DNA of 64,000 bases from the sequence record PP886230.1, one strand, 5' to 3'. The notes beneath the pieces are model-generated. The model had not been told where the DNA came from. It did no database searches and saw nothing but the letters and a program-made list of their open reading frames with translations. Each line of letters opens with the position of its first letter. Position 1 is the first letter of the stretch. This document shows positions 6,394 to 63,595 of this stretch, piece by piece. The position numbers and the translations under genes are program-made.

Positions 6394-6744
6394 ATGAAAA
6401 TTATTTTATTTTTTGTATGTATGTTAATGTGTGGATTGTCATATGCTGAACCATTGGAAGGTTTAGTTTGTACAGATGGTAATATTAAACATATCTATCA
6501 AGGTGATAGTGACGATCGAGATATTGTATATATTGATGGACAATCATATACGTTTGTTAAAGAGCATACAGTAGGCGACATTAGCTTCACTGAGTTTTCT
6601 AACGACACAGACCCTAACTTCTTAGCGTTTATTGAAGTAGATGTATATGAAGATAGTAATGGCACACAATATGCTAAATTAGTTATGATGCGTCGTGGTG
6701 CTAAAGAAACTAGTTTTGGTGGCTTGTGTAAATATAAGGATTGA
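6394..6744 (+). CDS. Exported protein with signal peptide
   Basis: MKIILFF...SYA signal; GGAGG RBS. Confidence 0.7.
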   Translation: MKIILFFVCMLMCGLSYAEPLEGLVCTDGNIKHIYQGDSDDRDIVYIDGQSYTFVKEHTVGDISFTEFSNDTDPNFLAFIEVDVYEDSNGTQYAKLVMMRRGAKETSFGGLCKYKD

Positions 6745-6933
6745 TATTATGTTGATTTATCAAAGTGATAATATTCGTGTTATGCAGCATCCCTACTTAC
6801 AAATCTTTGATGTGCAGCAGTATATGGAAGGTGATGACCCAAGAACCTATGGTCGTAAGTATGATTACTTCACTGTAAAGCAGTGTAAAAATATTAACGA
6901 AGTACGACAATTAGTTCAAGAACTTCAAAACAA

Positions 6934-44050: not shown

Positions 44051-44258
44051 TTCAATTACCCCTTGAGGCTCCAGCAAAAAGTTGGTTAGTACTCCATCCT
44101 AAATCTCGATCCTAAAAATTTTGGAGTACCTATGAAATAAAAGTTGGATCTTCGAAAGTTGAAATTTACGTTGGGACGTTTATGATTTGTGGGATATAAT
44201 GATGTTTGTAGACGGGTAGTTCTCAAGAATATCAGTACTGAATGGTGAAAGAAAGTTA

Positions 44259-44390
44259 TTGACATTATGATTCAGTACTGTATAATGTTTTACATAGAGA
44301 GATGAGTTGCCGCAAACAATTCATTCACTCTACCTCCTGTCGTGAGACAGTACAGAAAGATAGTTCCTCCAATGGGTGGTACATCTTTTT
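44259..44390 (+). ncRNA. Promoter-driven ORF-less ~100-nt RNA with three hairpins
   Basis: TTGACA-16-TATAAT; ATGAGTTG/CAATTCAT; CTGTC-GTGA-GACAG (GNRA); terminal stem plus TTTTT. Confidence 0.5.
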
Positions 44391-44691
44391 GAACCTCATA
44401 TGAAAATTGTAATAACAGTACTGATATTAACAGAATGGTGTCAGTACTGATTTTAATCTAAAGCATTATGCCACCAGCACAAGCTGGTGGATTCCCTCTA
44501 ACAGTATTCAGTACTACATGATAGTCTTCATCCTCCTAGGGTAACATAGTGAGGGCTATGATGGCAGTACTGAATACTCCCTTTCAAAAGATAGATCTAT
44601 GGTATAGTACTGACGGATTTTGGGCGTAGTTACCCTGGATGGATTTTGGACGTAGATATGTCTAGCCCTCCAGAAGTCTGGAAGTAAAGAT

Positions 44692-44794
44692 GGCTATCCA
44701 TCTAGACGGCTAAACGGCTAGATTTCTGGATGGCTAGACGTTTGGACGGCTAAACGGCTAGATGGGTACACGTCTGGAAGTATAGACGGCTAAA
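44692..44794. repeat. Iteron-like repeats GACGGCTAAA(CGGCTAGAT) at 44705, 44745, 44785
   Basis: Exact 40-nt phasing; seven GGCTA cores in ~100 nt. Confidence 0.8.
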
Positions 44795-44965
44795 TCAAAA
44801 TTTTATTTTGTTTTTCCAATAGTTCCCCTACCGCGTGGGGATAGTTTCCCCGCAGTATCTGAAGTTAGATTTTTCTGAATCTGGAATCATTATCTTATAA
44901 ACTGGGGGCAATGTCAACGGCCTGGCCGGATATTTTTAAAAATTTTTTCAGTACTGAATTTTGGG

Positions 44966-45232
44966 CGTAACTATGCACCCGATGGGCTTGAGTCTTTCTC
45001 GACTTGATGGAACTATTATACAGTACTGAAAAAATAAAGCAATACCCTGGAAGCAAAAAAGTTTTAATTAATTTGCTTGCTATCCTGGGCCGGACTATGG
45101 TACTATATTTCAGTACTGAGAAAGTGCGTTTACCTGCTAGGGTGCGGGAGTCTATCCTTTTTTTATATCTTGAATTTTGGACGGATCTTCCCACCCCCTG
45201 GGGTATCCGCTTTCTCGCGTCTATGTAGTAAT
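44966..45232. ncRNA. sRNA family B copies 1-3 (minus 44966-45009, plus 45110-45160, minus 45180-45232)
   Basis: Each follows its own promoter; core CCC-NNN-GGGTG; copies 2 and 3 are variants. Confidence 0.5.
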
Positions 45233-45410
45233 TATACGCTTTTTCAGGATCAAGTCAATACCTAAAAACAAAATAATTGAAAATAATTTAACGCGTTTAA
45301 ACGGCCCGTAACGCCCTGGATTGTTGGGAGTGGTGCAAATGTATAGCTTAGGTGTATTAATGCGTTAGAATGCGTCTGAGGCCGTTTTATGGGGTGTAGT
45401 AGTGATTTGG

Positions 45411-45503
45411 TTGATTCAGTACTGAATAATAGTACTCCTATATAGAAAGATAGTTCCCCTGGATTGATTCAGTACTGAATAATAGTACTCCTATATAGAA
45501 AGA
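45411..45503 (+). repeat. Exact 40-bp direct repeat (45411-45450, 45464-45503), each copy with two AGTACT
   Basis: TTGATTCAGTACTGAATAATAGTACTCCTATATAGAAAGA x2. Confidence 0.9.
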
Positions 45504-47054
45504 AAACTATTTTAAAAGTATTTGTAGAAAGTACTTGCACCGTACTGATAAAAGCGTATAATGTTTTACATCGAGAGCGGGAACACTTCCCGCTACACTT
45601 TAAGAGAGATTAATACGATGGCAACTCAAATCACCAAAATTATTGCTAACCTGGTTAACTTCCGCGACGAGATGAAAGATCTTCCGGCGGCGACGGTTAA
45701 AACTCACATTGACGCATACCGCGAACTGATTAAAATGCTGCCGCTTAAGCGTGAACAATACGCCGCTACCGTGATGCTTGATGCGATGATCCATAAGATG
45801 ATCGCCAGTGATTTGACGATGGTTTATCAGTATATGGGCGAAAATTTCGCGGTGTGTAGTAAGCCAGTACCAGGGATGGCAACAACTGAGGAATTGCACG
45901 GCTTAAACTTAAAACAAGATGCATGGGATAATATGCCTCGTTTCCTGGTATGGGCTGACAGTGGCAAAATTTACAAATAAGTTTAATAAAGTACTTGCAA
46001 ACTATGTTTAATGGCGTATAATGTTTTACATCAGGTGGGGAATAGTTCCCCACTATATAAGAGGATTAAAAAAAAATGGCTAAATCAAAAATGTTCTTAG
46101 GTCACAAAAACAAAACTCATTGGAATGTAAGCCTGTGGATTAATAACGATGAGGGATTGTATCGGTTGGCCCTGGACTTTATTGCCGCCAATACTAATCG
46201 CAATGATGCGGCCCGTCATATGATGTTATTTTTAGAACAGACTGGACAAGATAAAACACCGGACGGATTCAAATATAGCACTACTGCGATCCGTGCGGCG
46301 ATGGTTGGAATGTAATAGAATAGAATTTATTTAAAGTACTATTGCACGGGGATAGTACTTTATAATAGTGTTTTATTCATACACCAACGATAAGGGCAAC
46401 AGCATGAATATTAAGTATTTTGCGACGCGTGAACAAGCTCGGATCGCCGCTCGCCAGGACGGGGCAACGTTTAAAGATATGGGCGTACAATCGGAACGTG
46501 GTAAACGTTGGGCCATTGTAAAGCGTAGTACCGCCAGATCATTACAGTACTGGTTAGCGGCCTTAAAAAGTCCCGATAGTGTATCGCGTCGAGTGGTAGA
46601 AATAAAGCTCGACCGAAAGGGCAACCGCGTGACCGTGTACCGTACTAAAAAGATTGCAGTACTTGAATAAAAAGTACTTGCAAACTATGTTTAAAGGCGT
46701 ATAATGTTTTACATCGAGAGCGGGAACTCTTCCCGCCTATAACCTGGAGTAATAAAAATGACTAATATGTATATGACTGAAGTTAAAACCGTAAAAGATA
46801 CTACCACGAATAAAACTACTTACTTACAGCGGATCTGTGGTGTATGGCAACGTATCAGCAAATCAAAGTACTTTAAATTAACATCATATGCAAACCGTTC
46901 TGATTCATTCAGTACTGAAATAAAAGGTAATAAAGTACACCAATACGGCACTTATTATTATTACAGCCTGGACGCGATTGCAGTATAAGCAGTTTACAAA
47001 TCTTTACAATTGCCGGTATTGACTTATTTTGTCAGTACTGGCATAATGTATTCA

Positions 47055-47160
47055 TTGGCAGATAAGCCGTAGCCCATAGGGTGCGGGAGTGTATCTATAG
47101 AAAAATTAGTTTAGTATAGTTACAATTGTGCACCCGGTGGGTTAGCTGTTGTCATGGGGT
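47055..47160. ncRNA. sRNA family B copies 4 (+) and 5 (-), convergent
   Basis: Cores at 47071-47084 and 47130-47143; promoters at 47019-47047 (+) and 47163-47191 (-). Confidence 0.6.
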
Positions 47161-47272
47161 ATATTATGCCAGTACTTGATAATGCTGTCAATACTTTTTT
47201 TTACTATCCAGTACAGAAAACTATTTTTAAAAAGTACTTGCAAACTATGTTTAAAGGCGTATAATGTTTTAC

Positions 47273-47348
47273 ATCAGGACGGGGGAACGAAATAAGTAAC
47301 TTCCCGTTAAGTAGCCCAGGAGTAAGGCACACGAAAAACTCCCCTGAT
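47273..47348 (+). ncRNA. Structured RNA family A copy 1
   Basis: ATCAGG/CCTGAT closing stem, two inner stems, no ORF, followed directly by the next promoter. Confidence 0.6.
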
Positions 47349-47416
47349 AAAATAGTTTGACAAATGTTTTTAAAAGCGTATAATACTTACATCAACTACT
47401 GAATGAGGGTTACAAA

Positions 47417-48028
47417 ATGAAAACTATCACTACTACTACTTTCGTTATGGATTTTTCTGAATTGAACGCAGAACAAAAAACGTCAGCTATCGAACTGGTT
47501 CGGGAACGTGAAAAAAACTCAAACGACAATTATTTTTCTGAAAGTGAAATTGAATACTATAAAGAAACAGTACTACCGGAATATGGCATTAATGACGCTG
47601 AAATACAATTCAGTGGCTTTTGGTCCCAGGGTGACGGTGCATCAATCAGTACTGACCACGTTGACGCAGTGAAGTTTTTACGCAAGGTAAGAGCATTAAC
47701 TAAGTATCGCTCAATCCGTCACTTGCTGAATGAAGATGATTTGGCGATGAGTGTAAAGCGTTCGCACTCCCACTACTCGCATGAGAATACTGTAAGCGGG
47801 TACATTGAATCGGCTTACACTGATTTAACCGCAAAACAAGAAACGTTAGTTAATGAGCTTGAGGAACTACTCACTGATACTATTCGTGAATTGTCCCGCA
47901 AGTTGTACCGTGATTTAGAGAATGCATATGAGGATCAATTCACTACTGAAAACATTACGGCACTGATTGAGGGTAACGAGTATCAATTCAATGTTATTGA
48001 TGGCGTAGTGGAATCAATCGAATATTAA
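47417..48028 (+). CDS. Conserved phage/plasmid protein with FSGFWSQGDGA motif
   Basis: Family recalled as often auto-labelled antitoxin of a TA stability system; the label is unverified. Confidence 0.55.
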   Translation: MKTITTTTFVMDFSELNAEQKTSAIELVREREKNSNDNYFSESEIEYYKETVLPEYGINDAEIQFSGFWSQGDGASISTDHVDAVKFLRKVRALTKYRSIRHLLNEDDLAMSVKRSHSHYSHENTVSGYIESAYTDLTAKQETLVNELEELLTDTIRELSRKLYRDLENAYEDQFTTENITALIEGNEYQFNVIDGVVESIEY

Positions 48029-48647
48029 TTTAAAAAGTACTTGCAAACTAAGTTTAAAAGCGTATAATACTTTATATCGAGAGCGGGAATAGTTCCCGCT
48101 ACTAATGAGGAATACTACAAATGAATACTTTTACCTTCGCTCAATTGAACGCCCTGGATGTATTGTCTGATGCTTTGCGGGATGCAACTGAAAGCGGTTT
48201 ATTTGACAATGTTGACATTCACCCTGATGTAATTAATAATTTTTGTGATGCTATCGCAGAAGTACTGGAAGATCTAAAAAAATAATAGAAAGTACTTGCA
48301 ATTAGTTTTTAGTACTGTATAATGTTTTACATAGAGGGGAGAAATGGTTCTCCCTGGTAATGAGGAAAATACAATGGCTAATATCACTACTCTTTCCCAA
48401 CTGGAAGCACTGGTTAAATCTATGCGGGAACATGCCGACAATATCGGCGTAAAAGATCCAGCCGTTTGCTTCTGCGACGAATTGAATGATGATACCCTGG
48501 TAATAGCAGAAGTCCAGGACGTTTCTAACTATTCCTCGCGTTACACTGGCGGCGTAGCAAATAAAGGTGACTTCTGTTTATACCTTACCAAATAACAACG
48601 CGGGGAGATAATAACTCCCCGTTACTTTTTCAGTACTGAATCATTTA

Positions 48648-48700
48648 ATAGACGGATCTCGGCACCCGGTGGGTTAGTGACTGTTTCGTCTTGATGTAGT
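48648..48700 (-). ncRNA. sRNA family B copy 6
   Basis: TTGACA-17-CATAAT on the minus strand; AGACG...AACCC-ACC-GGGTGC...CGTCT. Confidence 0.6.
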
Positions 48701-49718
48701 AATTATGCCAGTACTGGATGCACTTGTCAACAACTATTTTTCAAATACTTTTTATTAAAATACTTGCTAATAGTTTTTAAACGCGTATAATGTTTTGCAT
48801 AGGGGGAGCGGTTCCCCTGGTAACTAAGGAATAATAAAATGCTTGAACAAATCAAATCAACGTCTGCGAATGTAACGGGAACGGTTGTACACTTTACTAG
48901 TGATGAATCGCGGGGCGTTCCCTATTGTGCTGTACATGTAAACACTGATGGCAACTACTGGTTTACGGTTTACGGATCATATTCATTTGGACGACCAGGG
49001 CATCAAAAAATTCTGGATAAAGTACAGCCAACGGGTAAAAATATCACGGCTGAAATGTTTTATAAAAAATCATAAAGTACTTGATAATAGTTTTTAGTAC
49101 TGTATAATATTTTACATCGCAAGGGGGTAATGGTTCCCCCTGGTAACTAAGGATAATCAAATGAAAGTTGCATTCATCGCCCTGGCTTTATCTGTTTCCT
49201 CTTTTGCTGTTAATGCGTCGTTAGATGTAAGTAGTGAAAAATTCATTCAGTGCACTGTAGCAATGACAGATGAAAGTACTGGCGAGATTGTATTAAAGGA
49301 TCTGGAGATTCAGCCGGAAGCATTTAAAAACGGCCCGTTCCATGAAGAAGACGAAAACGGTAGCACAACAATTTATTATGATGCCAGTACTAAACGCGGG
49401 TCGGTCACTGTTATGGATACTGAGAAAGTAACTCATACTGGCGTTATTAATTGCCGTTGATAGATACTACGGGGTAACATCATGACTAAGCGAATTGTTT
49501 TACTTAACGAAAGCAGTACTACACAACTACTTAACGCCGTGCATTATGATATTGAAACGAGCGTTAATCTTATCAGTACTGTAGTACTGTTGGACACTGG
49601 AAAGGTCGCCAATGATAAAGCGATTGCAGGTATACTAACGGATCTTGAGCCTGGTAGCAGTGCACCAATAACGTTAAATGGTAAAGTGTTTAATATTTTA
49701 CTCACTGATTAAGTACAT

Positions 49719-49742
49719 AGCCCACCTGGTGGGCTTTTTTGT
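49719..49742 (+). terminator. Terminator TAGCCCAC-loop-GTGGGCT-T tract (also ~50447 and ~54609)
   Basis: Hairpin plus U tract after a stop codon. Confidence 0.8.
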
Positions 49743-49829
49743 TTTTGTAGTATCGTAGTACTGAGATACTTTGAAAATAGTTTTAAAAAAGTAGTTGACA
49801 TTACCGCAGAAAAGCGTAGAATGTATTAC

Positions 49830-49902
49830 ATCAAGACGGGGAGCACTAAGTAGACCGCCAGTAAGTCGAACGAAAAACTGGACACGTCGAGAAAACTTTG
49901 AT
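49830..49902 (+). ncRNA. Structured RNA family A copy 3, leader of the H-NS-like gene
   Basis: Shares TAAGTAG and stem-AAG-N4-ACGAAAA-stem with covarying stem. Confidence 0.5.
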
Positions 49903-49943
49903 ACACTAATAAACGTAAACTAAACTTTAATTGAGGATTTATA

Positions 49944-50426
49944 ATGGCTAATGTAAAATCATTCATCAAAGCACTGGTAGCAAATGAAACTAACGTCGCG
50001 GCTGAGATCCTGGCTGAACTGGATAACGATACCATGAAAGCGGTACGCAATAATTTTAACATCGCGTACAGTACTGCGAAAGAACTACAAGCAAATAAAG
50101 CGGCAGAAATTGAAGCGGCAAAGGCGGCCCGTGAAGCAGAACTACAAGCAACAATCGAAAGTATCCAGGCGGCGGTGTCTGGATTGGATCTGGAAGTGGT
50201 TGTGGAAATGGCACATAAAGCCCTGGCGGTTAAGTATGGTGAAGATAAGCCAGAATCTAAACCCAAAAAATGGATTCAGGAACGCGTAGCGGTAGTACTG
50301 GACAACGGGGAAGAATATCTGATTCCGGTGCGTGGTAACTGTATTGCGGTAGTACTGGACGCTATCAAAGAAAGCGGTATGACTCGCGAGGAATGGATCG
50401 AAGCTCATCGCAAAGTTGAAGCATAA
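49944..50426 (+). CDS. H-NS/StpA-like nucleoid protein with degenerate DNA-binding motif
   Basis: Coiled-coil N-terminus and basic linker. C-term VVLDNGEEYLIPVRGNCIAVVLDAIKESGMTREEW aligns by eye with H-NS [35 protein letters not shown]. Confidence 0.7.
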   Translation: MANVKSFIKALVANETNVAAEILAELDNDTMKAVRNNFNIAYSTAKELQANKAAEIEAAKAAREAELQATIESIQAAVSGLDLEVVVEMAHKALAVKYGEDKPESKPKKWIQERVAVVLDNGEEYLIPVRGNCIAVVLDAIKESGMTREEWIEAHRKVEA

Positions 50427-50710
50427 CAATTAAAGTACTGAATCACTAGCCCACTGTATAAGTGGGCTTTTTTGTGTTTATCGTTTACCAGGCCACCAGC
50501 ACCGCCTAGAAACGATTCTAACGCATTAAACGGATTATCTGATGCATTGCCCTAGCTGGTGGCGTTAAGGCTGTAAGAACGCGATTGAGAGCGTTTAAAG
50601 TATTTTGCAAAAAGTAATAAAAAGTACTTGAACGATTAAGAGATTAGCGTATAATGTTTTACATCGAGAGGGGGAAACGGTTCTCCTTCCAAATCAAAGG
50701 AATCAAAACA

Positions 50711-53700
50711 ATGGCTATTATCATTACTCGCGTATCTGGTACTACTGGCAACGAACAAGTAGTTGCAGTCATTACGAACAAGGCAGGTGCGGAATTGCAA
50801 AATGCAATGAATACCTGGGCCGTTAATGAGTTCGGTCAGTGGGCAAGTGTAGCATACATTGAAACCTATCAAGTGCCGTCGATTAGTTTAACTGATTTGG
50901 GCGTTGAGCGTATCCTTTGCCTTGATGAATTAAATTAAAAAAGTACTTGCAAAGTAAATCGAATAAAGTATAATACATTACATCAAGGGGAGAAATGGTT
51001 CTCCCCACTACAAGGAAACTAAAATGGCTATCATTACTAAAATCAAAGTTAGTAAATCACTGGTTAAACTTGAAGAAGTGAAAGAAGGTTATAAAGTATC
51101 TTGGTGCGGTATGTATCGGACGTTCGCAGATATAGATGATGCGATCAATTATTACACTGACACGGTTAAAAACTTTGTTCGTGCTGATGTGGTTATGGCA
51201 GTGGCAACATATAAAGCATCAAAAGAAAGTAAGTAAAAATATTATCACAGTACTATTGACATAGTTTGATAGTACTGGCATAATAACTTTTATCAAGACA
51301 ACTAAGAGGAAATTAAAATGGCTAACATCAATACTATAGCAGCACAAAATATCAACCTGTCTTCTGTTGAAGTTGTACATATTGCCGCTCGGCGTTGGTT
51401 CCAGGCTTCATATGGTAACACTTATTTCTCTTTAAGTGTAGACGTAGAAATTGATGGTAATTTTATTGAAGTAGTAAACGTGCCGTTCCAATATGGATAC
51501 GGGGATCATTTTGACACTGTAGCAATGGAAGAATTTAGCAAGGTTATTAATATGGAAGGTAAAGAGTTTTTACGCGGTTCTTATCTTTCCCGTTTTTGCC
51601 GTGATAATAATATCACTGTTTATAGTTCTGTTAGTGATGTTAAACGCAAAAAAGATCTTTAATTAGCTTTACTTTATGCAGATACTTTGATATAGTGTCT
51701 GCATAGGGGAAAGAAATTAAATTAACTTAAGAGGATAGTATAATGAAAAATATCAGTACTTTAATCGATGCAGGTACTCATGTTCGTCGGTCTATGGTTG
51801 CAACCAGTACTACAAAACAAGTAGCGAGCGGTTATCTTGTATTTGTGCACGATGGTAAACTCCTGGAACGTTCAATCAATTTTGATGTTAAAAACAATTG
51901 CCGTTTTATTATCTTTAAGCGTGAGCAATATAAAATTGATTTACCAGCAAAGCCCATTAGTGGGGCGTACAACGTGCAATCATTGTTTGAACGTCAACCA
52001 TACACCTATTAATCAAAACATCGTTAGCGGTCGATTCAGGCCGCTTATATTGGGGATTATACCATGAACGTTAATCAAGTACTGAATGAGATCGAAAGCA
52101 TCATTAAACCGATGAAGCGTACTGATGCTATGTTAACACCGGAAGAATGCCGCCTTTATGAGCGTTACAGCGTCGAACAAGTCCAGGCAATGGCTATGGC
52201 TACCCCAGCCGTTAAACCGCCTGAGAATGCGTTACAGGACGTTACAGGGGATTATATCATCAATCCAGTACTAGGGAAGATGGCTGCAATCACCGAAGAT
52301 CAACAAGACTACTTAAGCCAGTACTTAAAAGGTTAATTAATATGCTTACTGTACAGGATAAGATCGACATCTTAAAGGTTAATATGTATGTGATTGATGC
52401 AGAACCTGGTAAAGTATTTGCATACGATGATAGTACTGTAAGCGATTTCTACTATAGCCAGGCCGTGGGGGATCTTTCTGTACAGTCGGTTATTGAAAAC
52501 GTAGTTAATGCAGCGTATGAGCATTTACTTTCAAATAGTACTTGCAATTAGTTTTTAAACGCGTATAATGTTTTACATCGAGAGCGGGAATAGTTCCCGC
52601 CTCACTTTTAAGGAATATGAAATGAAAGCATCAAAAAAGAGTACTAACAAGAAAGCACGTTCAACCTTAGATGGGGTATTCCCTTTACGTTTCGTTGATG
52701 AAGTGGTTTCCTACCCGCCTGGCCTTACTCCTGAGATGGTAGAAAGTTTGCGTAAATCTAAAAAATAGTACTTGCAATTAGTTTTTAGTACTGTATAATG
52801 TTTTACATGAAGGGGAGAAATGATTCTCCCCAATAACAGGAGAAACAAAATGAAACAATACAACGCTCGGTTTGATGTTACTATCGGTAACGGCAAAGGT
52901 CAATTCTCTTTCAGTACTCGCCGCAGTTATACAGAAAACTTCCTGCGTAATTGTGCATTGACCGCCGCTCAAATTAAACATTATTTTCAGGCTAAAAAAT
53001 GAGATCATTAGCTTATTACAGTTCGGCCCTGGTCGGTGCATTGATCGCGGCGTTGTTAGTAACCTATCTATTCTTTATGGTGATTTAAATGAATCCTAAC
53101 GGTATAATTTACAGTACTCCTAAAACGAAAGCAGACAAGGTAAACGCTAAAAAAGCGAAAGTAAAGGAGTACATCAAACAAGGAATGACACGAAAGGCGG
53201 CGATTCTAAAAGCTAAAAATAAATGAAAAAGTGGTTGACTTCGGTCAGCCATTTTGCTATTATATATTCATTGAGAGATAGCTCACTAGCCCACAGGGTG
53301 CAGGAGTGTATCTATTGTATAATGTTTGAGTACTGAAAACTATTTTAAAGTATTTGATAAAAAGTACTTGCAAACTATCTCAATAAGCGTATAATGTTTT
53401 ACATCGCAAGGGGAAACGGTTTCCCCTAGTAATAAGGAAACGAATCATGACTATCTCAATTGCTCAATCTAACTTTGAAAATGAAATCATCGCCCAGGCA
53501 CTGCGTTTAAATGATGGTCGGGCCGAAATCAATTACGGTTTCAATTCAGGCGGTTGTGAAAAATATCAGTACTTTGTAACGGCTGATGGCGGTGTACTGG
53601 GCATCAATACAGTTATTGTAAACATACAGAAAATTAATTTCAATGATCCAGACGATAGCCAGTTTTACATCACTGGCGTAGACGTGAACTATGAGGATGA

Positions 53701-54905
53701 CTCACTAACTGATGACCACACTGGCGAGAAGTTAGAAAGTGCATACGGTGAAGATGATTATCAGTCCGGTCCAGAAGATTTCGAATAATATTAAAAAATA
53801 GTTTGACAATAGATTATAGTACTGTATAATAGTTTACATCAAGGGGAGAAAAACTTCTCCCCACTAACAGAGAGAGAAAACAAAATGGCTAATATCCGGT
53901 CGAAATTAAAAAATGCAAAACAAGTTTTATTTTCAGATCATGAATACTTTAATAAAGATATTACAGGAGTTACAAGTATCAAGGAAGTAAAAGAAAAAAC
54001 CGGCGTTTTGTGTGATGTGCGATTAGTTGGGACATTTGGGAATAACGTGCTATATCGCTGTGGTGATTACAATTTTACACTGACTATCATTAACTAAAAA
54101 TATTATCACAGTACTATTGACATAGTTTGATAGTACTGACATAATAACTTTTATCAACTACACTACTAAGGAATTAAAAATGGCTATCATCGCAAAAACT
54201 GAAATCATCGGCCTGGATTCTATCATCATGACGTTTGAAGATCAAAAAGGTATGTATGTGGTTTCCTATGGTGATTATGTTCGGGAGTATGAAACGGTAG
54301 ACGAAGCCTTTGAAAGTTACATTCGCCAGGTGAATAAAGCATACGACGACTACCGCTAAAATATATTACCAGTACTATTAAAGATATTGACAACGTTTGA
54401 TAGTACTGTATAATAAGTTTTATAAACAGTAGTTAACTTAACCTAAGAGAGAAATAAAATGATCGCACTGGATTCATTCATCGACGCAGTACTGGCAAAA
54501 ACTGGCGAGGATCTGACCGCAGAACAATACGCGATGATCGAACAATGTCAACAGGACGGTAAATCGGTGAAAGATACTGTTAAGATTATCCGCAAGATGT
54601 AAGATTATAGCCCACTGGTTAACGCTGGTGGGCTTTAATTCATTACCCTATACAATGCCAGTACTAAACCGTTTATCTCGTTAGAATGCGTTACAGGACG
54701 TTTACCAATGATTAGCATGAAATCAGTACAAAAACAAATAGAAACATTATCAAAAATTAAACGTAAACAGTACTCCTTAGAATATACAATCAATGGTAAC
54801 TATCATCTAATGAAAGAAAATAATTTTATAGTCATTGATGAATCATTGCAAATCATTAGTATAGTACTGAAAGCATTAATCAATGACAGAAAAAAATTAA
54901 AATAA
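50711..54905 (+). other. Early small ORFs 50711-50938, 51024-51236, 51318-51662, 51743-52012, 52064-52336, 52342-52551, 52622-52768, 52850-53002, 53447-53788, 53885-54097, 54180-54359, 54708-54905
   Basis: Promoter cassettes and RBS; no confident function. Confidence 0.7.
53270..53315 (+). ncRNA. sRNA family B copy 7
   Basis: AGATA-GCTC...AGCCC-ACA-GGGTGC...GAGT-G-TATCT after a terminator-promoter. Confidence 0.6.
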
Positions 54906-54944
54906 ACTATTGACAATATCATCCAGCACTGGCATAATACTTAC

Positions 54945-54992
54945 ACCAAGACGAGAACGTCACTAACCCATAGGGTGCACAAATGTAACTGT
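54945..54992 (+). ncRNA. sRNA family B copy 8
   Basis: TTGACA-17-CATAAT at 54910; core AACCC-ATA-GGGTGC. Confidence 0.55.
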
Positions 54993-55236
54993 ATAATATT
55001 GATCAAAAAATGATCTGATCAATACTTGATCAATTTGCGTAAAGTAGTATAATTCTATGCAGTTGGTTAGACGAAAGGTTATGATTAGTAGTGCAAGTGT
55101 ATAAAAATTTTCATGGTGTATCGTTCCGCACATATGGGGATGAATATGTGGTATCATGTGGATTGGAAAAAGTAAGAACAAGTAATATTATTGTCGCATT
55201 ACAGTACTATAGTATTTTTATAATGAGGTTAAAATA

Positions 55237-55494
55237 ATGGCTGTAGGATTCGCGAAAGATGGGGCCGAGCAAGACGAGATTAACGCAGTGATTCAGGCCG
55301 CCGTTAACCACGCTAGAAAGCAAATTAACGCACAAATAGAATCACTGATACATTGCCTCGACTGCGGCGATATAATCCCTGAGAAACGACGCCAGGCCGT
55401 TAAGGGATGTAAGTACTGCATAACTTGCCAGGAGGATCATGATAGTACTTTTAAACGTCCCCCGCGTAATTGTTGGCATAGATCTATGAGATAA
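55237..55494 (+). CDS. TraR/DksA-family C4 zinc-finger protein (YbiI-like)
   Basis: G[FW]AxD N-terminus; CxxCGxxIPExRRxAVxGCxxCxxCQ. Confidence 0.9.
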   Translation: MAVGFAKDGAEQDEINAVIQAAVNHARKQINAQIESLIHCLDCGDIIPEKRRQAVKGCKYCITCQEDHDSTFKRPPRNCWHRSMR

Positions 55495-55557
55495 AAAGTA
55501 TTGACAGTACTGAAAGATAGTGTATAATGTTTTATATCTTAACTGAGGATAGTAATC

Positions 55558-55914
55558 ATGGGAATACAACATATCACGCGTACTACTGACAATGGCGAGA
55601 TCACTGGCTATCAAGTACAGGGCAAAGTAGCACAATTGCAGTACTGGTTTGTGAAACGTGGAATCATTGCACCGGATCTTGATTATGACCGTGTAGCGTT
55701 TATTGATTCTCTTTATGTTGATCCTGATAGTCGGGGCAATGGTGAAGGTAACGAATTAATGAATGCCTTTATTGATGCCGCCGATGATTCAGATTGTATC
55801 ATTTTAGAATGCGATACGGGAGAAGATAACGCCTTTAATCTTAAAGAATGGTACGAAGGTTTCGGATTCGAGGTACTGATCGATAGTGAATATCCTATCA
55901 TGATTTTATCATAG
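55558..55914 (+). CDS. GNAT-family acetyltransferase
   Basis: IDSLYVDPDSRGNGEGNELM (motif A) and WYEGFGF (motif B). Confidence 0.85.
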   Translation: MGIQHITRTTDNGEITGYQVQGKVAQLQYWFVKRGIIAPDLDYDRVAFIDSLYVDPDSRGNGEGNELMNAFIDAADDSDCIILECDTGEDNAFNLKEWYEGFGFEVLIDSEYPIMILS

Positions 55915-57307
55915 TACTTGCATTTAGTTTTCAGTACTGTTATAGTACTTGCATCAAGGGGAAACATCTTCCCCTACTAAGAGGAAATAAAAATGGAAAA
56001 CTTATCAAGTATTTTAGTACAAGATGATTTCGGTAATCCTGGAAGTGCTATCATTGTTCGGGGTAATAAAGCAACGTTTGTTATTGCTGGTGGACCAGTA
56101 CAGCGTAGCATTAAAAATAATGCTGTTACCATTAATAATGTACGCTATCGCTTAGATAAAGAATTGATTCATAAACTGTAATATTAATTTAATAGAGGAT
56201 AACAATAAATGTACATTCATACTACTATCACAAAGGAAGTCCGTTGCCAGTTCGAAAGTATTCCGGGCGTATGTTTCATCACTGGTACGTTTTCCCCTGG
56301 TGATCGTGATAATCCAGTACTGTTACAATTACGCCATCCATCATGGGATAAAGCATTTGATCTACCGTTGAATGAATTCGCAACTACTGCTGAAAAGTAC
56401 ATTAAAAATATTCGCGAGAATGATCGACTATTCATTAATGCTTTTAGTGATTCCGCGTTAAGCGAGATCCACGGCGTATTGGTTGCAATCATGGAATCAA
56501 TGCAGAAAACTAAATTCAAACAAGGTGAATAAAAACTATTGACAATGCAACCCAGTACTGTATAATAGTTTACATGAAGGGGAGAAATGATTCTCCCCAC
56601 TGAGAGGAAAGAAAAATGCAAGGTCAACTAATCGTTCGTAAATGGTCTGATACTAACGAAAAACCGTGGGATGTACAATACATCGGACCGGATGGGGTAT
56701 CACGTTATCAGCCTGGCGTAACGCATAGTACTGAGCAATATGCCGCCGCTCACCGCGAACGCCTGTTAGAATCCATGAAACAGGGATTCTGTGAAAAATT
56801 CATTCAAGATCATTGGCTGAAAGATTAATAGAAGGAGTACAGCTTATGCAAATGAATCCGATGATTATTGTTTTAGCTGTACTTATGATCATTCATGCAA
56901 TTGTAGAAGTATTAACGCAATCAGGAGTAATAAAATGATTCAAGTAGAATTATCAGTACTGAAAGATCTGTTTTATCGGTTAGGTACTACTGGAGAGTAT
57001 CCTAAAAGTGATACCGCAAAACTTTTTGTATCACTCGACTTATGGCAACGCGAACAATTAGTAATGTCCTGGCGTAAAGGTAAAGCAGATCGCGAGGTGA
57101 AAGCATGAAAGAATTCTTATTCGAAGTAGTGTTTCAAGGTGTCGGTAGTAACCAACTGATTCGCTCAAGTGGTTACAATGTTAACCAGGCATGGAATAAC
57201 ATTAAACAAATGTACCCGAACGCTATCACCTATCGCAACCCGAAAGAAGTTTAAAAATATTTGAAAAAGGGATTGACTCCGGTCAGTCCCTTTGCTATTA
57301 TATACGC

Positions 57308-57350
57308 ATAGAAACAATTCAGCCCACCGGGTGCATAAATGTATCTATTA
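57308..57350 (+). ncRNA. sRNA family B copy 9
   Basis: ATAGA...AGCCC-ACC-GGGTGC...TCTAT. Confidence 0.6.
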
Positions 57351-57426
57351 TATGCTGGTGGCTAGTACTGAAAACTATTTTTAAAAAGTACTTGCATTGT
57401 ATTTAGAATCAAGTATAATGTTTTAC

Positions 57427-57499
57427 ATCAGGACGGGGAACGAAACAAGTAACCCCGTTAAGTAGTCCAGGAGTAAGACATACGAAAACCTCCCCTGAT
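57427..57499 (+). ncRNA. Structured RNA family A copy 2
   Basis: Near-copy of 47273-47348; substitutions keep the stems paired. Confidence 0.6.
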
Positions 57500-59659
57500 A
57501 AAATAGTTTGACAATAGAAATTAAACGAGTATAATACTTACATCAACCACTGATAAGGAAACATAAAATGCGGATTCTACTGACAGCTAACGAAATCGAA
57601 CAAGTACTGACTACTAACCTGGAAGACTGGAAACGTGAAGCAGATATCCAGGCGGTTCAATGGTTAAATGATAAGTTAACGCCGGATGACTTAAGCAAGA
57701 TTGTAGATCCTCAATTCTACGAAGATATCCACGACACCGCGTTAAGCGTCGAGGATGTACTAGATAAGCACTTTATTGATACTGATTTGCAGGTTTACGG
57801 TCGTAAAAACTTTATCACTATTCACGACATTTACAATAATTAAGTATTGACAAAGTATCTTAGTACTGTATAATAGTTTACATCAAGCGAGGGGAATGGT
57901 TCCCCTCCTAACTAAAAGAGAGAAATAAAAATGGCTAAGTGCACTATCTGCAAGAAAGAAATAGTATTAGTTCCAAGTGCCCGTGAACGTGCCGCTCGGT
58001 TCGGTGGCAAAGCGTCAGACTATACAAAAATGTTTACTACCCATACAGCTTGCCAGGTAGCAAAACGTTCACAAGAAAGCGTAGAATTAATGCGTAAACT
58101 TTCCAAAAAATAAGTATTGACAAAGTATCTTAGTACTGTATAATAGTTTACATCAAGTGAGGGGAAACGGTTCCCCTCCTAACAAAGAGAGAGAAATAAA
58201 AATGGCTATGATCCTTGCCCAGAAAGTAGAATTGAAAATTGTAACCTCCTTTGACATTAACGTTAATCGGTGGACTGATTCACACGGCAATACTTACCAC
58301 TCTTGCTACGTGTCTGCGTTAATTGGCGACCGCTGGGAAGACCTGGGACACGAAACCTTTACATACGGTTACGGTACACAAGGCGAATACACGGGCTTGG
58401 AGATCATTAAAGAAACCGTTATAGGTTTCAACCCGAAAGAAAAAGTTATTCACCGCATCGAGGAAGAGATCAACAAAGAAATAACAGTTCGCTACCACGA
58501 TGTAAAACGTAAGAAAGACATGTAATAGAATCCATTTAAAGTACTATTTGACATTGCCCAGATAGTACTTTATAATAGACTCTAACTTGTAGTACTAACT
58601 TAACTAATAGGATGTATACCATGATTACTAAATTCTACGCTACCCGTGAAGCTGCCCGTATTGTTGCACGCGAGGAAGGCGAAACATTTAAAGACATGGG
58701 CAAAGATGCACCGAAAGGTCAACGCTGGGCCGTACAGTTCAAAGAGATCTCTGATATTGTGAATTCACCGGAGCCAGTACTAACAGCAGCAGAACTAAAA
58801 CGAGCGGATTTACTGGCGTCAATACTTGATGCACAAGATGAGTTTATCGCTGATTCTGATATCAAAGTACAGACAAACCACACCGCTTGGACTCACGCGG
58901 ATCACCTGGCAAACCTTAAGCGTCCAAGTGAACTGATTCGCAACCAGAAAGAGATCCGACACGACCGTAAGGGTAATCGTGTAACAGTATACAGTAAACG
59001 CCGCCAGGTTATCTAATAACTTGCAGTACTAACAACACGGCGGGATCAGTTCCCGCCTTTTTTATAGGACAAACAAAATGATTAAGGTTCAACTATATAA
59101 AGATAACATCTTACGGGTACACTATAAAGCACCTCAGAGAATCATCACAAAGGCCGTACAGCTTGCTAATGAGTTTATTAATGGTAACCTATTACCAAGG
59201 AAGTTAAGCAACGGGAAACTGCGTGTAATCGATGTGGACACTAACAACAGAATAGTAATAGAGAACACAGGAAAAATAAACCTATATGAACACCAACAAT
59301 ATAATAAGAAAATAAAACTAATATCACGTTGACAGTACTCAAATGTTTTAGTACTATATGTACATACCAACACGGGGGAAACAAAATGATTACTTTAGAA
59401 AAACGTATCAAAGAAACTACATCGCTGGTGGAACTGTTAACAGTACTCAAATGTAAAACAACACCATTCAGCACGCCGGACTTTATTAATATGGTTGATG
59501 TTAATGGTCGCTATCGTATCACGGTCGAACAAGGAGCGGCGAAAGTATTCAGTACTAAAAACACGAAGGAAGTGATCCACGCCGTTAATGTTAAAAAAGT
59601 AGTTGCCATTGATAGTAAAGTACTGTAAGATAGTTACATTAACTCAAGGAGAACATGCA

Positions 59660-60244
59660 ATGCGTAATTATACTAAATTCATCCGTACACTGTCAGAAAT
59701 GGAAACCAACAAAGAGATCCTTTCAGCTTGTCGGTTAGCTGGCCTGGAGATCATCGGTGCTGGTTCTTCCCGTATAGTATTCGCTTTAAATGATCGGTTA
59801 GTGATTAAGGTCGCGAATTGTGATGCGGGTGTAGAACAAAATGAAACTGAATGTAAGGTATGGAATTTTTTAGACTATGACCGCCCTCAGTTGAAACAGT
59901 ACTTTGCAAAGGTGCATATGCATTTATGCGATCCTGATAATATGTTTATCGTTATGGATCGGTTGAGTACTGCAAGCAAAGGCAGCGTAAAGCACGTTAA
60001 CGCGTGCAACGAATTAAAGTATAATATTAAACGTAATGCCATTGAACGCCAGCACCGCTTTGCTGATGCACTACAACACGTTGATGATACATTATCAACA
60101 CTAACGATAAGAGATATCAGAAAACAGAATATCGGCCAGGATCGTAATGGACTTATTAAAGTACTTGATTACGGTTTAACCCGCAATATCTGGAATCAGT
60201 ACTATAAAAAGCGTGATGTAGAAGCAAGTAAGGTAACACGATAA
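59660..60244 (+). CDS. Ser/Thr protein kinase-like protein
   Basis: IGAGSSRIV, VIKVA, DIRKQN, LDYG; GGAG RBS. Confidence 0.8.
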   Translation: MRNYTKFIRTLSEMETNKEILSACRLAGLEIIGAGSSRIVFALNDRLVIKVANCDAGVEQNETECKVWNFLDYDRPQLKQYFAKVHMHLCDPDNMFIVMDRLSTASKGSVKHVNACNELKYNIKRNAIERQHRFADALQHVDDTLSTLTIRDIRKQNIGQDRNGLIKVLDYGLTRNIWNQYYKKRDVEASKVTR

Positions 60245-60297
60245 AAAAAGATTAAAAAAGGGATTGACTCCGGTCAGTCCCTTTGCTATTATATATT

Positions 60298-60345
60298 CAT
60301 TGAGAGATAACTCACTGACCCATAGGGTGCGGAAGTGTATCTATT
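60298..60345 (+). ncRNA. sRNA family B copy 10
   Basis: AGATA...GACCC-ATA-GGGTGC...TATCT. Confidence 0.6.
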
Positions 60346-62557
60346 ATATAAGTATTCAGTACTGAAAACTATTTTTAAAAAGTACTTGCATTGTACTTAG
60401 AATCAAGTATAATGTTTTATATCGAGAGGGGAAATGGTTCTCCCTCAAAGAACAAGGAATAAAATCATGACTACAATGACTTGCATTCACGCTTCAAACC
60501 TGCTTAATGATGCGGCCTTTAATGTTGAAACAGAATATCAATGTTATCGGGATGAAAATAAAAAAGTTTTTGTAGTTGATAATAATGGTTTCCATATTGA
60601 ATTGCAATCCGGCTTCACTGGCGTTGATGGTAAATCAGTATGGGGCGTACAGGATGATAAAGGCACATATCATTTTAAACGTAATTAAGTATTGACAAAG
60701 TATATCAGTACTGTATAATAGTTTACATCAAGGGGAGAATAGTTCTCCCCACACCAATAAAAGGAAACATAATTATGTCTAGCTACTCCGCTACTATGAT
60801 CATTAAAGATATGAACGGTAATCCTACTTCTGCTGGTGGATCATTTGGAAACATTAATTTAGATGGTCGGTTATCCATGCAATCAGCAATCGATGCAGCG
60901 AAAGAAGTTTTTAAGAATGAATGTACTGTTAGTAAGCTGGATTATATGGGATTTGCTATCGAAAAAACTAATCGTTTTGTGGACTACAAAAAACCACTGA
61001 TGATTGATACTAACCTGAAAGCAAACGAAGTGGAGTACTTATTATGACAGTTGAAGAAGTAAAAAAAGTACTGGCAGTACTACGCTATCATAATCATTGT
61101 AAGGTGAAGAATGATCCTGATTATCTTGATTCATCCCTGGAAGAGGATACACTACAAGCAATAAGCCATATGCAAAAAATGCTTAAGCGTATGACCGAAA
61201 AGAACAGGCCAGACTATATCGGAAATAAAATTTAAAAAGTACTTGCATTGTAGTTAGATTAACGTATAATGTTTTACATAGAGCGGGGGAATAGTTCTCC
61301 CGCCAGTCCAGGAGATACACCATGAACACTATCGAAATCACTATCAATGCACACGTATACGACAACGTAGTACTGCAAACTACTATGACCGCTAATGATA
61401 CCAGTACTTTGCGGAATACTGTTATTAGTGCCGTATGTGCCGCTATCGGTGATGTCGCCCTGGAAAATGCAAAACACGTAAACGATGGTTTCACTATGTG
61501 CAAACGTGATAACGCAAAACATATCATCGTGGAAGGTTACGGCGGTGTAGAATTTAATGTTTATATGAAAAAAGTACTTGCATAATAACTAAAACAAAGT
61601 ATAATGTTTTGCATAGGGGGAGATATCCTCCCCCACTAAAAGGAGTACTAAAATGGCTAACTTTGATGAACTGATGCGGGAAGTAGCTAACCTGGCAGAA
61701 GAGAAGAAATCATTCGATTCTATCTATAACACCGCTCATCGTGATTCAGTACTGGCATGTAACCAGGATCAAAAAGATGAACTAATCGCCACCTATCATG
61801 AAGCATGGAAGTACTACCGACAATGGGAGAAAGAAGAAAGCGAGTCTACCATCAACGGCATCAATAATCTAATCTAAAAGTTTTATTTCAGTACTATTGA
61901 CATAGCTTGATAGTACTGATGTAATAACTTTACTAACTACAAGGGGAAACATAATGGAACAGTTCACACAATATCGGGTAAATCCTCAAGCTATGGCCTA
62001 CGTAGAAGACCATAAAACGTTACCAGTACTGCAACCAGTTAAAGGCCATATCTATCGTGCAATGTCGTGGTGTGCGGCCCAGGATGGCTATAAAACCGTA
62101 GCCGTGGGTATGTACTGCGGTAATGGTGAATGGTTTGATCCAAATAATCCGGTAGCCATTGACAGTACTGAAAAAATGAAATGGGCCGACTACATCGAAG
62201 ATATTTCATAAAAACTATTTGACAGTACTAACCAGTAATGTATAATGTTTTACATAGAGCGGGGGAATAGTTCTCCCGCCAATAGTTTGGAGTTAAACAT
62301 TATGTCTATCGCTATCTCCCTGGTTGAAGTACTGAAAGAAGCTAAAGCCAACCAGATCGACGTAAAGATCCAGGAACTACAAAACGGCTTAATCGGCTGT
62401 ACTTGTACCGCTGGTGGAGCGGCAGACTATCGAGAACACGAATCACTCGAATCACTGGTTCGGTATCTTTCCATGATCGTTGATGATTGGAGAATCATCT
62501 AACAAAAAAGAATAAAAAAGGGATTGACTCCGGTCAGTCCCTTTGCTATTATATACG

Positions 62558-62598
62558 CATAGACAAAAACTAGCCCACAGGGTGCATAGGTGTATCCA
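62558..62598 (+). ncRNA. sRNA family B copy 11
   Basis: Core AGCCC-ACA-GGGTGC after the terminator-promoter at 62520. Confidence 0.55.
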
Positions 62599-63595
62599 AA
62601 ATATATAGTTAATAACGGTGAGTAACTATCTGCTGGTGGAACTAAAACTATTAATAAAAAAGTATTGACAAAGTATATCAGTACTGCGATAATGTATCTC
62701 GTAGGGCGGCAATGGTGCGACGGCCCACAAAGTTAGGAGATTCAAAATGACTACTTCAATCGCTATCGTTAAAGCTTTCATCCGTACTAATGTTTCCTCT
62801 GTATTCATCGACGGCCTCGACCGTAACGTAGAATACTCAATCATTATCGCACAAACGGCAAACGGTTCTCGGTACATCCTGAATGATAGTGAAGCAAATC
62901 ACTACTACTTCACTAAAGCCACTGGCTTTAAACGCATCGATGCTGATGTAGTATACGCTAAGATGAATAAGCTGGTAGATAAGATTAACGCTAAAGGTAC
63001 TATAGATTTACAGTACTGGACCGAAACCGATCCAGAGTATGGATCTCACCGCTACCTGAATCCAGGTATCAAAATGTAAAAAGTACTTGCATAGTACTTA
63101 GATTCATGTATAATGTTTTACATAGAGAGGGGGAAATGGTTCTCCCTCCTAAATTAAGGAGTTTTATCATGACCTTCTCAATCAATTCCTTCGCTGACGT
63201 TTTAGTACTGGCCCGGACTTTTGGTAAAGATGCACTGGAGTACGCTGTAAGTAATGGCACTATCCAACCGGAACAGTGCCGCATCATTGGAAACTGCAAA
63301 CGTTGGGCGGTATCCAATACTATTGCACTGGAAAACTTCCACGATGGCAACAATGAATATTCTGTTGATGTAGTATTCGAAGCCGTTGATCTCGGCGGTA
63401 TCTATAATACTAACCTGAATGATGTGCGTATCGTTCGCACGGGGTTCGGTGCTTATGATGTATCTATCCGTGAAGCTATGAACACCGGATACATTAGCAA
63501 GGACTTACTTGCTCACATCATGCAGCTGTGTACGGAACGTAACGAAGCACGTACTATCTTAGGGCTGTAAGCAATACACATCACCAAACATCATA

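Follow-up and report, generated by a model that had tools for sequence, protein, structure and literature searches.

The 64,000-nucleotide (nt) stretch of DNA from sequence record PP886230.1 analyzed here (the window) contains three copies of an RNA motif, Family A, which a preliminary description had reported as a multibranch RNA with covarying stems. The data showed that Family A is the jumbo-phage version of a conserved RNA with multiple pseudoknots, located in the first ~60–100 nt of early transcripts, and that these transcripts are made by the host sigma70 RNA polymerase from strong early promoters of virulent enterobacterial phages. We are highly confident that the fold is real, with a closing or long-range helix, a single-stranded UAAGUA sequence and an H-type pseudoknot, and that the same core is present in the A1 leader of phages T7 and T3 and of about 490 relatives. 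Family A and the T7 A1 leader are thus members of one much larger RNA family. In the full-text literature searched, outside which the older subscription literature lies, no account of the element was found; two papers only reproduce the T7 sequence.

Family A units contain a small H-type pseudoknot

The three copies were found at 47273–47348 (unit 1), 49830–49902 (copy 3) and 57427–57499 (unit 2), exactly where they had been described. The 30-nt pattern TAAGTAG-NN-C-NNN-AGTAAG-N4-ACGAAAA had three matches in the 64 kb, whereas 100 shuffles gave an expectation of 0.00. A covariance model of the 44-nt core also gave exactly three matches in the window, with scores of 55.8, 54.7 and 53.1 bits, and the next-best match, at 15 bits, was inside a coding region. 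Units 1 and 2 both have, as originally proposed, the ATCAGG/CCTGAT closing stem together with two arms, ACGGGG/CCCCGT and GGAG(T)/(A)CTCC, and both structures were recovered by minimum free energy folding. Copy 3 keeps TAAGTAG and the loop, and its stem is CCAG(T)/(A)CTGG, also in agreement with the first reading.

The core shared by all three copies consists of UAAGUAG and a subsequent small pseudoknot, both located inside a closing helix. A hairpin with a stem of 4–5 base pairs (bp), named S2, carries a 14–17 nt loop (UAAG-N4-ACGAAAA), which pairs back to the 3 nt that follow UAAGUA. The resulting helix, S1, is formed by G-N-C, the three bases after UAAGUA, and G-N'-C, the three bases after the UAA of the loop. 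Because the strands follow in the order S1 5′, S2 5′, S1 3′, S2 3′, the fold is an H-type pseudoknot; its loops are L1 of 2 nt, L2 of 3–4 nt and the A-rich L3, GAAAAA. The core consensus can be written as UAAGUAG, G-N-C, 2 nt, a 4-bp stem, (A)UAA, G-N'-C, NN-A-C/U-GAA-A/C-AA and the 3′ strand of the stem, and all three window copies agree with it without exception (53–56 bits).

In unit 1 (+ strand) the closing helix pairs 47273–47278 with 47343–47348, arm 1 (HP1) occupies 47279–47307 and UAAGUAG 47308–47314, while S1 pairs 47314–47316 with 47326–47328 and S2 pairs 47319–47322 with 47339–47342. The corresponding regions of unit 2 (+ strand) are the closing helix 57427–57432 with 57494–57499, arm 1 at 57433–57458, UAAGUAG at 57459–57465, S1 57465–57467 with 57477–57479, and S2 57470–57473 with 57490–57493. 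S1 is GUC/GAC in unit 2 versus GCC/GGC in unit 1. Copy 3 (+ strand) is devoid of arm 1; its UAAGUAG is located at 49847–49853, S1 pairs 49853–49855 with 49865–49867, S2 pairs 49858–49861 with 49878–49881, and the closing helix is formed by 49835–49838 with 49885–49888 and by 49830–49834 with 49898–49902. Hence, the enclosing helices of the window copies are AUCAGG/CCUGAU in units 1 and 2, and GACG/CGUC together with AUCAA/UUGAU in copy 3.

The claim that AAGUA and ACGAAA recur twice per unit is correct for units 1 and 2, but the second occurrence, in the loop of arm 1, is not conserved in the related phages A73, 121Q and EJP2, and is for this reason probably dispensable. Within Family A proper there is little variation: only the S1 middle pair covaries, and the arm 1 loop is variable. 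The z-scores of minimum free energy folding were weak (−1.4, −2.5 and −0.15), and the support for the structure comes from covariation, not from folding energy.

Covariation supports three helices across unrelated phage groups

The comparison of 25 cores from all phage groups showed that S2 is 100% paired, in the forms CCUG/CAGG, CUUG/CAAG, CCAG/CUGG and GGAG/CUCC, with compensatory changes at three of the four pairs. In the same cores S1 is also 100% paired, and its middle pair N-N' is A-U, C-G or U-A and is never mismatched. The observed covariation of S1 and S2, scored on 23 distinct sequences from four phage groups, was reached by none of 500 shuffles, and sliding the S1 partner by one column decreased the pairing to 33–35%. 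A fourth type of the S1 middle pair, G-C, was found in a metagenomic T7-like contig (L074). All four Watson–Crick types are seen in the hairpin stem and the pseudoknot pair. A Salmonella phage, KE18, provides a natural test of which loop tolerates insertions, as its element (~390–414) has a 24-nt insertion, itself a small hairpin, exactly in the pseudoknot loop L2, and all other conserved positions are kept.

The AGUA and GAA sequences, which had been regarded as a signature of loop-E/sarcin–ricin-type motifs, are invariant, and the covariation and wobbles fit ordinary pairs in which the G of AGUA is joined to the C of ACGAA (G-C or G·U) and the U of AGUA to an A of ACGAA (U-A). S1 probably continues in this way by two further pairs, G-C and U-A, formed by the GU of UAAGUA with the AC of ACGAA, which in unit 1 would join 47311–47312 with 47331–47332 (+ strand). 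The C of ACGAA is changed to U, giving a wobble, in three aligned sequences and several further contigs, and to A only in LTH01.

A third helix, K, was defined in 29 T7-like elements, where the loop of hairpin 1 pairs with the 5–6 nt directly 3′ of S2. It occurs as GUCAA/UUGAC, GUCAUC/GAUGAC, GUCGGU/ACCGAC, GAUUAG/CUAAUC, GCUAA/UUAGC, GUGAA/UUCAC and GUCAC/GUGAC, is 99.3% paired, and has compensatory changes at five of five pairs, with 3–4 pair types each; slid controls collapsed to 23–33% paired. In the myovirus versions of the element the core is enclosed instead by a closing helix, which begins at the first transcribed base or close to it. The different placement of the 5′ strand of the enclosing helix in T7-like phages and in the window is an architectural variant. 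The G·U wobbles fit only the + strand reading, which indicates that it is the transcript sense that folds. The covariation thus reaches well beyond the three window copies, and is strong across unrelated phage groups. The suggestion of a novel structured noncoding RNA or protein-binding leader is well supported, as the stems covary across these groups, an additional pseudoknot is present, and no Rfam family matches.

The same core is located in the A1 leader of T7 and T3

In T7 the core is at 551–586, between the annotated starts of the A1 (498) and A2 (626) transcripts, and it ends 3 nt before the −35 box of A2, while in T3 it is at 532–576 and runs into the annotated A2 −35 box. With the covariance model, T7 scored 62 bits and T3 scored 67 bits, versus 53–56 bits for the window copies. 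Like Family A, the T7 and T3 leaders contain UAAGUAG and the pseudoknotted hairpin with the (A)UAAG-N4-ACGAAAA loop, and they are likewise made by the host RNA polymerase from the first strong early promoter. They differ from Family A in the enclosing helix, which in T7-like phages joins the hairpin-1 loop to the 5–6 nt after hairpin 2 (the RNA of the A2 −35 hexamer in the case of T7 and T3), whereas in Family A it involves the first six bases of the transcript. In addition, a separate 5′ hairpin precedes the element in T7-like phages, and each genome has one copy. This region of T7 and T3 is annotated for promoters only, with no RNA feature. Few phages have been studied as well as T7, whose A1 promoter region serves as a standard template for transcription, and a conserved double pseudoknot in this place without annotation, Rfam family or published description in the literature searched would be a notable gap.

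In the T3 record, the leader is separated from gene 0.3 by an annotated RNase III site, R0.3. Cleavage at R0.3 would detach the leader from the 0.3 mRNA, which favors a co-transcriptional or trans role of the element, and means that in T7-like phages it can be neither an mRNA stabilizer nor a translational operator. The genes downstream from the window copies encode mutually unrelated proteins, assigned to PHROGs of unknown function, while in T7-like phages gene 0.3 follows, so the element is not a gene-specific regulator.

A perfect boxA of the rrn/nut type (CGCTCTTTAACAA) was also observed in T7-like early leaders, 20–220 nt downstream from the element: at 808–820 in T7 (~220 nt downstream), at ~436–448 in GAP227 and at ~4160–4175 in L032. 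The T7 boxA is not annotated in the T7 RefSeq record.

The element is widespread in phages of enterobacteria

A BLAST search with unit 1 showed 87–93% identity to sequences in unrelated myoviruses of ~140–146 kb, which belong to Justusliebigvirus (phi92-like phages muut, outra and EmilieFrey) and to Vequintavirinae (V5-like phages A73, W70, A7_1 and A5-4). The myovirus copies are always unannotated, and their layout is always promoter, unit, promoter, gene. The core of copy 3 matched T7-like Yersinia phages, Munch, 7t3, fENko-Kae01, Hallingskeid and LTH01, of which Munch and Hallingskeid are jumbo phages. A BLAST search with a 57-nt T7 segment matched 490 phage records, each at a single site, from Escherichia, Klebsiella, Salmonella, Yersinia, Enterobacter, Citrobacter, Shigella, Serratia, Cronobacter and other hosts, where the segment is annotated as nothing or as "promoter". 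Pattern scans added 33 IMG/VR and 30 metagenome stretches, mostly T7-like contigs of 37–45 kb. In the pattern scan of the genomes of 185,579 species there were three matches, two without stem pairing, while the third (L050), a T7-like leader in a metagenome-assembled genome of an uncultured bacterium, is probably a phage contig. Thus, the element does not belong to the host chromosomes.

All copies begin at the +1 of a strong sigma70 promoter or close to it, and a second promoter is located 3–42 nt downstream from most copies. The core is absent from the scanned genomes of SP6, T5, rV5 and phi92, which shows the element to be accessory. It looks to have been exchanged horizontally among the myoviruses. 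We also observed that the region 3001–3438 of muut and the window region 57385–57843 have in common a whole module, which consists of the first promoter (P1), the unit, the second promoter (P2) and a 91-amino-acid gene (MRILLTANEIEQ...). The muut unit, however, carries the GCC/GGC variant of window unit 1; it is therefore a mosaic, and recombination between units is implied.

A possible co-transcriptional role on the host RNA polymerase

The lineages that carry the element, which number three or four and are unrelated, have in common only their enterobacterial hosts and the use of host sigma70 RNA polymerase, which points to a host-directed function in the first minute of infection. Possible roles are the control of polymerase processivity or the capture of a host factor or of a defense component. 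The function is constrained by the facts that the element is made by the host RNA polymerase in the first ~100 nt of the earliest transcripts and that it is independent of the following gene. Given these constraints, a polymerase-directed role was ranked first because the putL RNA of phage HK022 is the closest functional precedent.

The put RNA contacts RNA polymerase at the zinc-binding domain of the beta′ subunit. The ~70-nt putL begins at +2 of the PL transcript, consists of two stem–loops and a triplex, and binds the transcribing polymerase, in which it suppresses pausing and termination without any protein; it is active without tethering (PMC9378689). The put elements occur in E. coli phages at the start of early transcripts made by the host RNA polymerase, and are not tied to a particular gene (PMC9378689). 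Units 1 and 2 resemble them in their length (73–76 nt), in their two arms, and in their start at the predicted +1 of an early promoter of the host RNA polymerase. On the other hand, there is no sequence or model similarity between them, and put contains a triplex while Family A contains an H-type pseudoknot.

It is possible, on this analogy, that the element acts co-transcriptionally on the host RNA polymerase as put does, and we put this reading forward tentatively. The element would emerge from the exit channel when the polymerase usually sits on the next tandem promoter, and there the folded RNA could engage the elongation complex or a factor bound to it, which would change the pausing or termination behavior for the rest of the early operon. 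It could be conjectured that retained sigma70 would pause the polymerase at the −35 and −10 boxes of the next promoter as the element finishes folding, and that such a pause would either give the RNA time to engage or be what the RNA relieves. Early transcribed sequences, including ones linked to T7 A1, reportedly alter downstream termination (Telesnitsky and Chamberlin; Goliger et al.; both 1989, J Mol Biol).

Several observations weigh against a polymerase-directed function. Besides the lack of sequence similarity to HK022 put, there is no boxA near the jumbo-phage units, and no conspicuous terminators follow these units that would need overriding. The A2 and A3 transcripts of T7 do not contain the element, and the early operon is still expressed. 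The second promoter is not present after all copies, the exceptions being L032 and Pipis. The absence from rV5, phi92, T5 and SP6, which marks the element as accessory, fits an anti-defense or decoy role equally well. Finally, the contigs from RNA libraries (wastewater and other) that cover the window were uninformative, because they are fragmented at repeats, directionless and probably derived from DNA carry-over. The simplest explanation of an apparent double variant in these contigs, 47315 C>T with 47327 G>A, is that the paralogous unit 2 was mapped onto unit 1.

The broader proposal is that these RNAs form a previously unrecognized class of double-pseudoknot RNA, an "early leader element", which heads the first host-transcribed RNAs, is horizontally exchanged, and either reprograms the host RNA polymerase as a factor-independent effector in the nascent transcript, unrelated to put, or decoys a conserved host protein or defense; we give this combined proposal a chance that falls a little short of even. 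The small size of the element (45–75 nt) and the covariation, which resolves its helices to single base pairs, allow the design of mutants that disrupt or restore the pairing. Results obtained with T7 A1-derived templates that include the first ~100 transcribed bases may be affected by the element.

Alternative explanations

A less probable, though still sizeable, alternative to the action on polymerase is that the element is released as a trans-acting decoy or sponge, which would accumulate very early and titrate a conserved host RNA-binding protein or a defense component. The release would be due to RNase III at R0.3 in T7-like phages, and in myoviruses to RNase E, which would cut in the A/U-rich stretch that precedes P2. 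The patchy, apparently horizontally transferred distribution, with 87–93% identity between Asteriusvirus, Vequintavirinae and Justusliebigvirus and absence from rV5 and phi92, is typical of accessory or anti-defense cargo. The dedicated strong promoter, the three copies per genome, the location in the terminal repeat and the irrelevance of the downstream gene are also consistent with a decoy, and the compact fold with its fully paired 5′ end would give a stable RNA. However, the unit is never followed by a terminator, so no discrete small RNA is encoded, and no Hfq-, CsrA- or ProQ-type signatures are conserved across the groups, as the GGA motifs of Family A are CCUG in T7-like phages. There are also no repeat arrays like those of type III toxin–antitoxin systems, and no toxin genes. 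The preliminary description had suggested a decoy for a toxin or for the regulator of an H-NS-like gene; neither was supported, because no toxin family was above threshold in the neighboring genes, no array resembling a type III antitoxin was present, and the gene after copy 3, which was below threshold in Pfam and falls into a PHROG of unknown function, showed no sign of H-NS.

Somewhat more doubtful is the explanation that the element protects the 5′ end or insulates folding, such that its paired 5′ end keeps RppH and RNase E away from the P1 transcripts, or serves to insulate the leader, as an elaborate version of the simple 5′ hairpin found on the remaining early transcripts of the phage. 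A GC-rich 5′ hairpin (families D1, D3, D7 and D12) directly follows about 25 other early promoters of the window, the first transcribed base of Family A is already in the closing helix, and the P2 transcripts of the genes preceded by units 1 and 2 do not have a 5′ hairpin. A plain hairpin would, however, be enough for this purpose, and ~20 invariant unpaired or tertiary positions with two pseudoknots across unrelated phages exceed the need; moreover, the T7-like element is not at the 5′ end, where a separate hairpin comes first, and the R0.3 site separates it from gene 0.3. A riboswitch-like aptamer that senses a small molecule or an ion reporting the host state, and so tunes early transcription, appears unlikely. 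The preQ1-I aptamer is a small H-type pseudoknot in which L1 is short, the second stem has 4 bp and the third loop is A-rich, and the element, with S1, a 2-nt L1, the 4-bp S2, a 3–4 nt L2 and a 6-nt A-rich L3, resembles such small aptamers in topology and loop lengths; its junction and loop nucleotides are also highly conserved. In contrast to preQ1-I, Family A has different conserved bases and no queuosine gene context, neither a terminator nor sequestration of the Shine–Dalgarno sequence was found downstream as an expression platform, no metabolic gene is associated with it, and no Rfam riboswitch model matched even at E ≤ 10.

The two remaining explanations are very improbable. For a self-cleaving ribozyme that trims the P1 leader speak the complex pseudoknotted fold and the invariant junction bases in phage genomes, and a loose similarity to pistol, as a hairpin loop of the element pairs with a downstream segment and UAAGUAG forms a linker. 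The pistol ribozyme, which is often phage-associated, has a 5′ hairpin whose 6-nt loop forms a 5–6 bp pseudoknot with a downstream segment, and an A-rich linker after the hairpin. It differs from the element in strand order, as helix K closes after a second, pseudoknotted hairpin, and no Rfam ribozyme model matched; no cleavage of T7 A1 RNA is known from decades of in vitro transcription of A1 templates. Even less credible is a function at the DNA level only, where the sequence would serve the promoter that follows as an UP element or spacer, or be a relic of promoter duplication. A promoter is indeed located 3–42 nt downstream in most cases, and the loop A-tract of T7 is at about −49 to −43 of A2, but compensatory changes in three helices and strand-specific G·U pairs are not explained by a function of duplex DNA, and the spacing between element and following promoter is variable, with no such promoter after some copies.

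Known RNA elements that do not account for Family A

The search of the whole window with Rfam at gathering thresholds gave nothing relevant, and neither did searches of T7, LTH01, unit 1 and the T7 leader at E ≤ 10. No Rfam model of a known ribozyme (pistol, twister, hammerhead, HDV-like or hatchet) matched; the preQ1-I riboswitch was rejected on the absence of a match at E ≤ 10 and on the unrelated downstream genes, and ARAGORN found no tRNA or tmRNA in the window. A homolog of HK022 put was rejected because the best match of the core covariance model in the whole HK022 genome had 7.9 bits (E 1.5) and was outside the put regions. The lambda nut and rrn (boxA–boxB) sites are likewise signals in leader RNA, which bring about processive antitermination, and boxA is present in T7, GAP227 and L032, as described above. 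They differ in that the window units have no nearby boxA (GCUCUUUAACAA), the loop is 14–17 nt long and not a GNRA-like pentaloop, and no N-like protein is implied. The boxA-like matches in the window were at chance level, and the sole perfect boxA is on the other strand at 6554–6565, in a region without promoter or leader features that is probably coding.

A type III antitoxin RNA (ToxI-like) was dismissed, as the units are single, 2.5–7.6 kb apart, and form no tandem array, and the neighboring genes have no toxin family above threshold. The UAAGUA sequence does not have a T at position 6 of a −10 element and its distance from +1 varies between 18 and 58 nt, for which reasons a sigma70-dependent pause element in the unit was set aside. 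The bases required for a three-frame stop signal, a Shine–Dalgarno mimic (UAAGUAG versus UAAGGAG) or a T-loop are not conserved.

Location of the units in the early region of the jumbo phage

The window region 47000–50500 is 99.9% identical to Escherichia phage vB_EcoM_E9.1 (PP886230, 367,851 bp), and has 92–97% identity to PBECO4, 121Q and other Asteriusvirus-type coliphages of ~350–385 kb. Each Family A motif is present twice in PP886230, 347,744 bp apart, once per ~20.1-kb direct terminal repeat; for example, positions 3415 and 351159 of the record are the equivalents of 47308 in the window. The direct terminal repeat (1–20107 and 347745–367851 of the record) makes up the final 20,107 bases of the window (43,894–64,000), and thus the window is the right end of an Asteriusvirus-type jumbo coliphage genome and stops at its physical end. 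The terminal repeat is a dense early region with ~25 near-consensus sigma70 promoters, each followed by a short + strand gene.

The first base of each window copy (A47273, A49830 and A57427) is the predicted +1 of a strong early promoter of the sigma70 type, where +1 was placed 7 nt after the −10 hexamer by analogy with the T7 A1 spacing. On the + strand, P1 of unit 1 (47238–47265) consists of TTGCAA, a 16-nt spacer and TATAAT; P1 of copy 3 (49795–49822) of TTGACA, a 16-nt spacer and TAGAAT; and P1 of unit 2 (57392–57419) of TTGCAT, a 16-nt spacer and TATAAT. The initial transcribed sequence of the window early promoters, AUCGAGAG, resembles that of T7 A1. P2 of unit 1 (47357–47384, + strand), with a perfect TTGACA, a 16-nt spacer and TATAAT, is located 8 nt past the unit and drives a gene at 47417–48028 (203 amino acids, phrog_5162), while P2 of unit 2 (57508–57535, + strand), a perfect consensus at most 8 nt past the unit, drives a gene at 57568–57843 (91 amino acids, phrog_14947). 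Copy 3 is followed by a weak promoter-like site at 49898–49926 and by a gene at 49944–50426 (160 amino acids, phrog_27871).

The units had been called free of open reading frames, which is correct in substance, but two short open reading frames, at 47149–47295 and 49795–49923, overlap them and are annotated as hypothetical coding sequences in PP886230 (CDS0011, 3256–3402, and CDS0019, 5902–6030, respectively). As each of them crosses a P1 promoter and the 5′ part of a unit, they look like spurious gene calls.

The early promoters themselves form a repeat family with 26 copies in 44252–63136 (e.g., 45528–45584, 46671–46727 and 52535–52591), whose layout is AAAGTACTTGCA/TTGACA, N16 and TATAATGTTTTACAT. 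Nearly all of these copies have AUCGAGAG-like bases at +1, which are followed by a GC-rich 5′ hairpin (GGGGAGAAnnnnTTCTCCCC or GCGGGAAnnnTTCCCGC) and then by a Shine–Dalgarno sequence. Fusions of a terminator with a promoter were observed at 53226–53281, 57264–57319, 60255–60310 and 62515–62570, and further ones at 6928, 10171, 10354, 11696, 12756, 17043, 18325 and 20583. They consist of a 12-bp hairpin (AAAGGGATTGAC TCCG GTCAGTCCCTTT) with a TTGAC −35 box inside the stem, a T-run and a TATTAT or TATAAT −10 box; one sequence would therefore end one transcript and start the next. Small hairpins with the core GCCCACCGGGTGC are located at 57318–57345 and 47125–47150, directly after such fusions and a short way upstream of Family A promoters.

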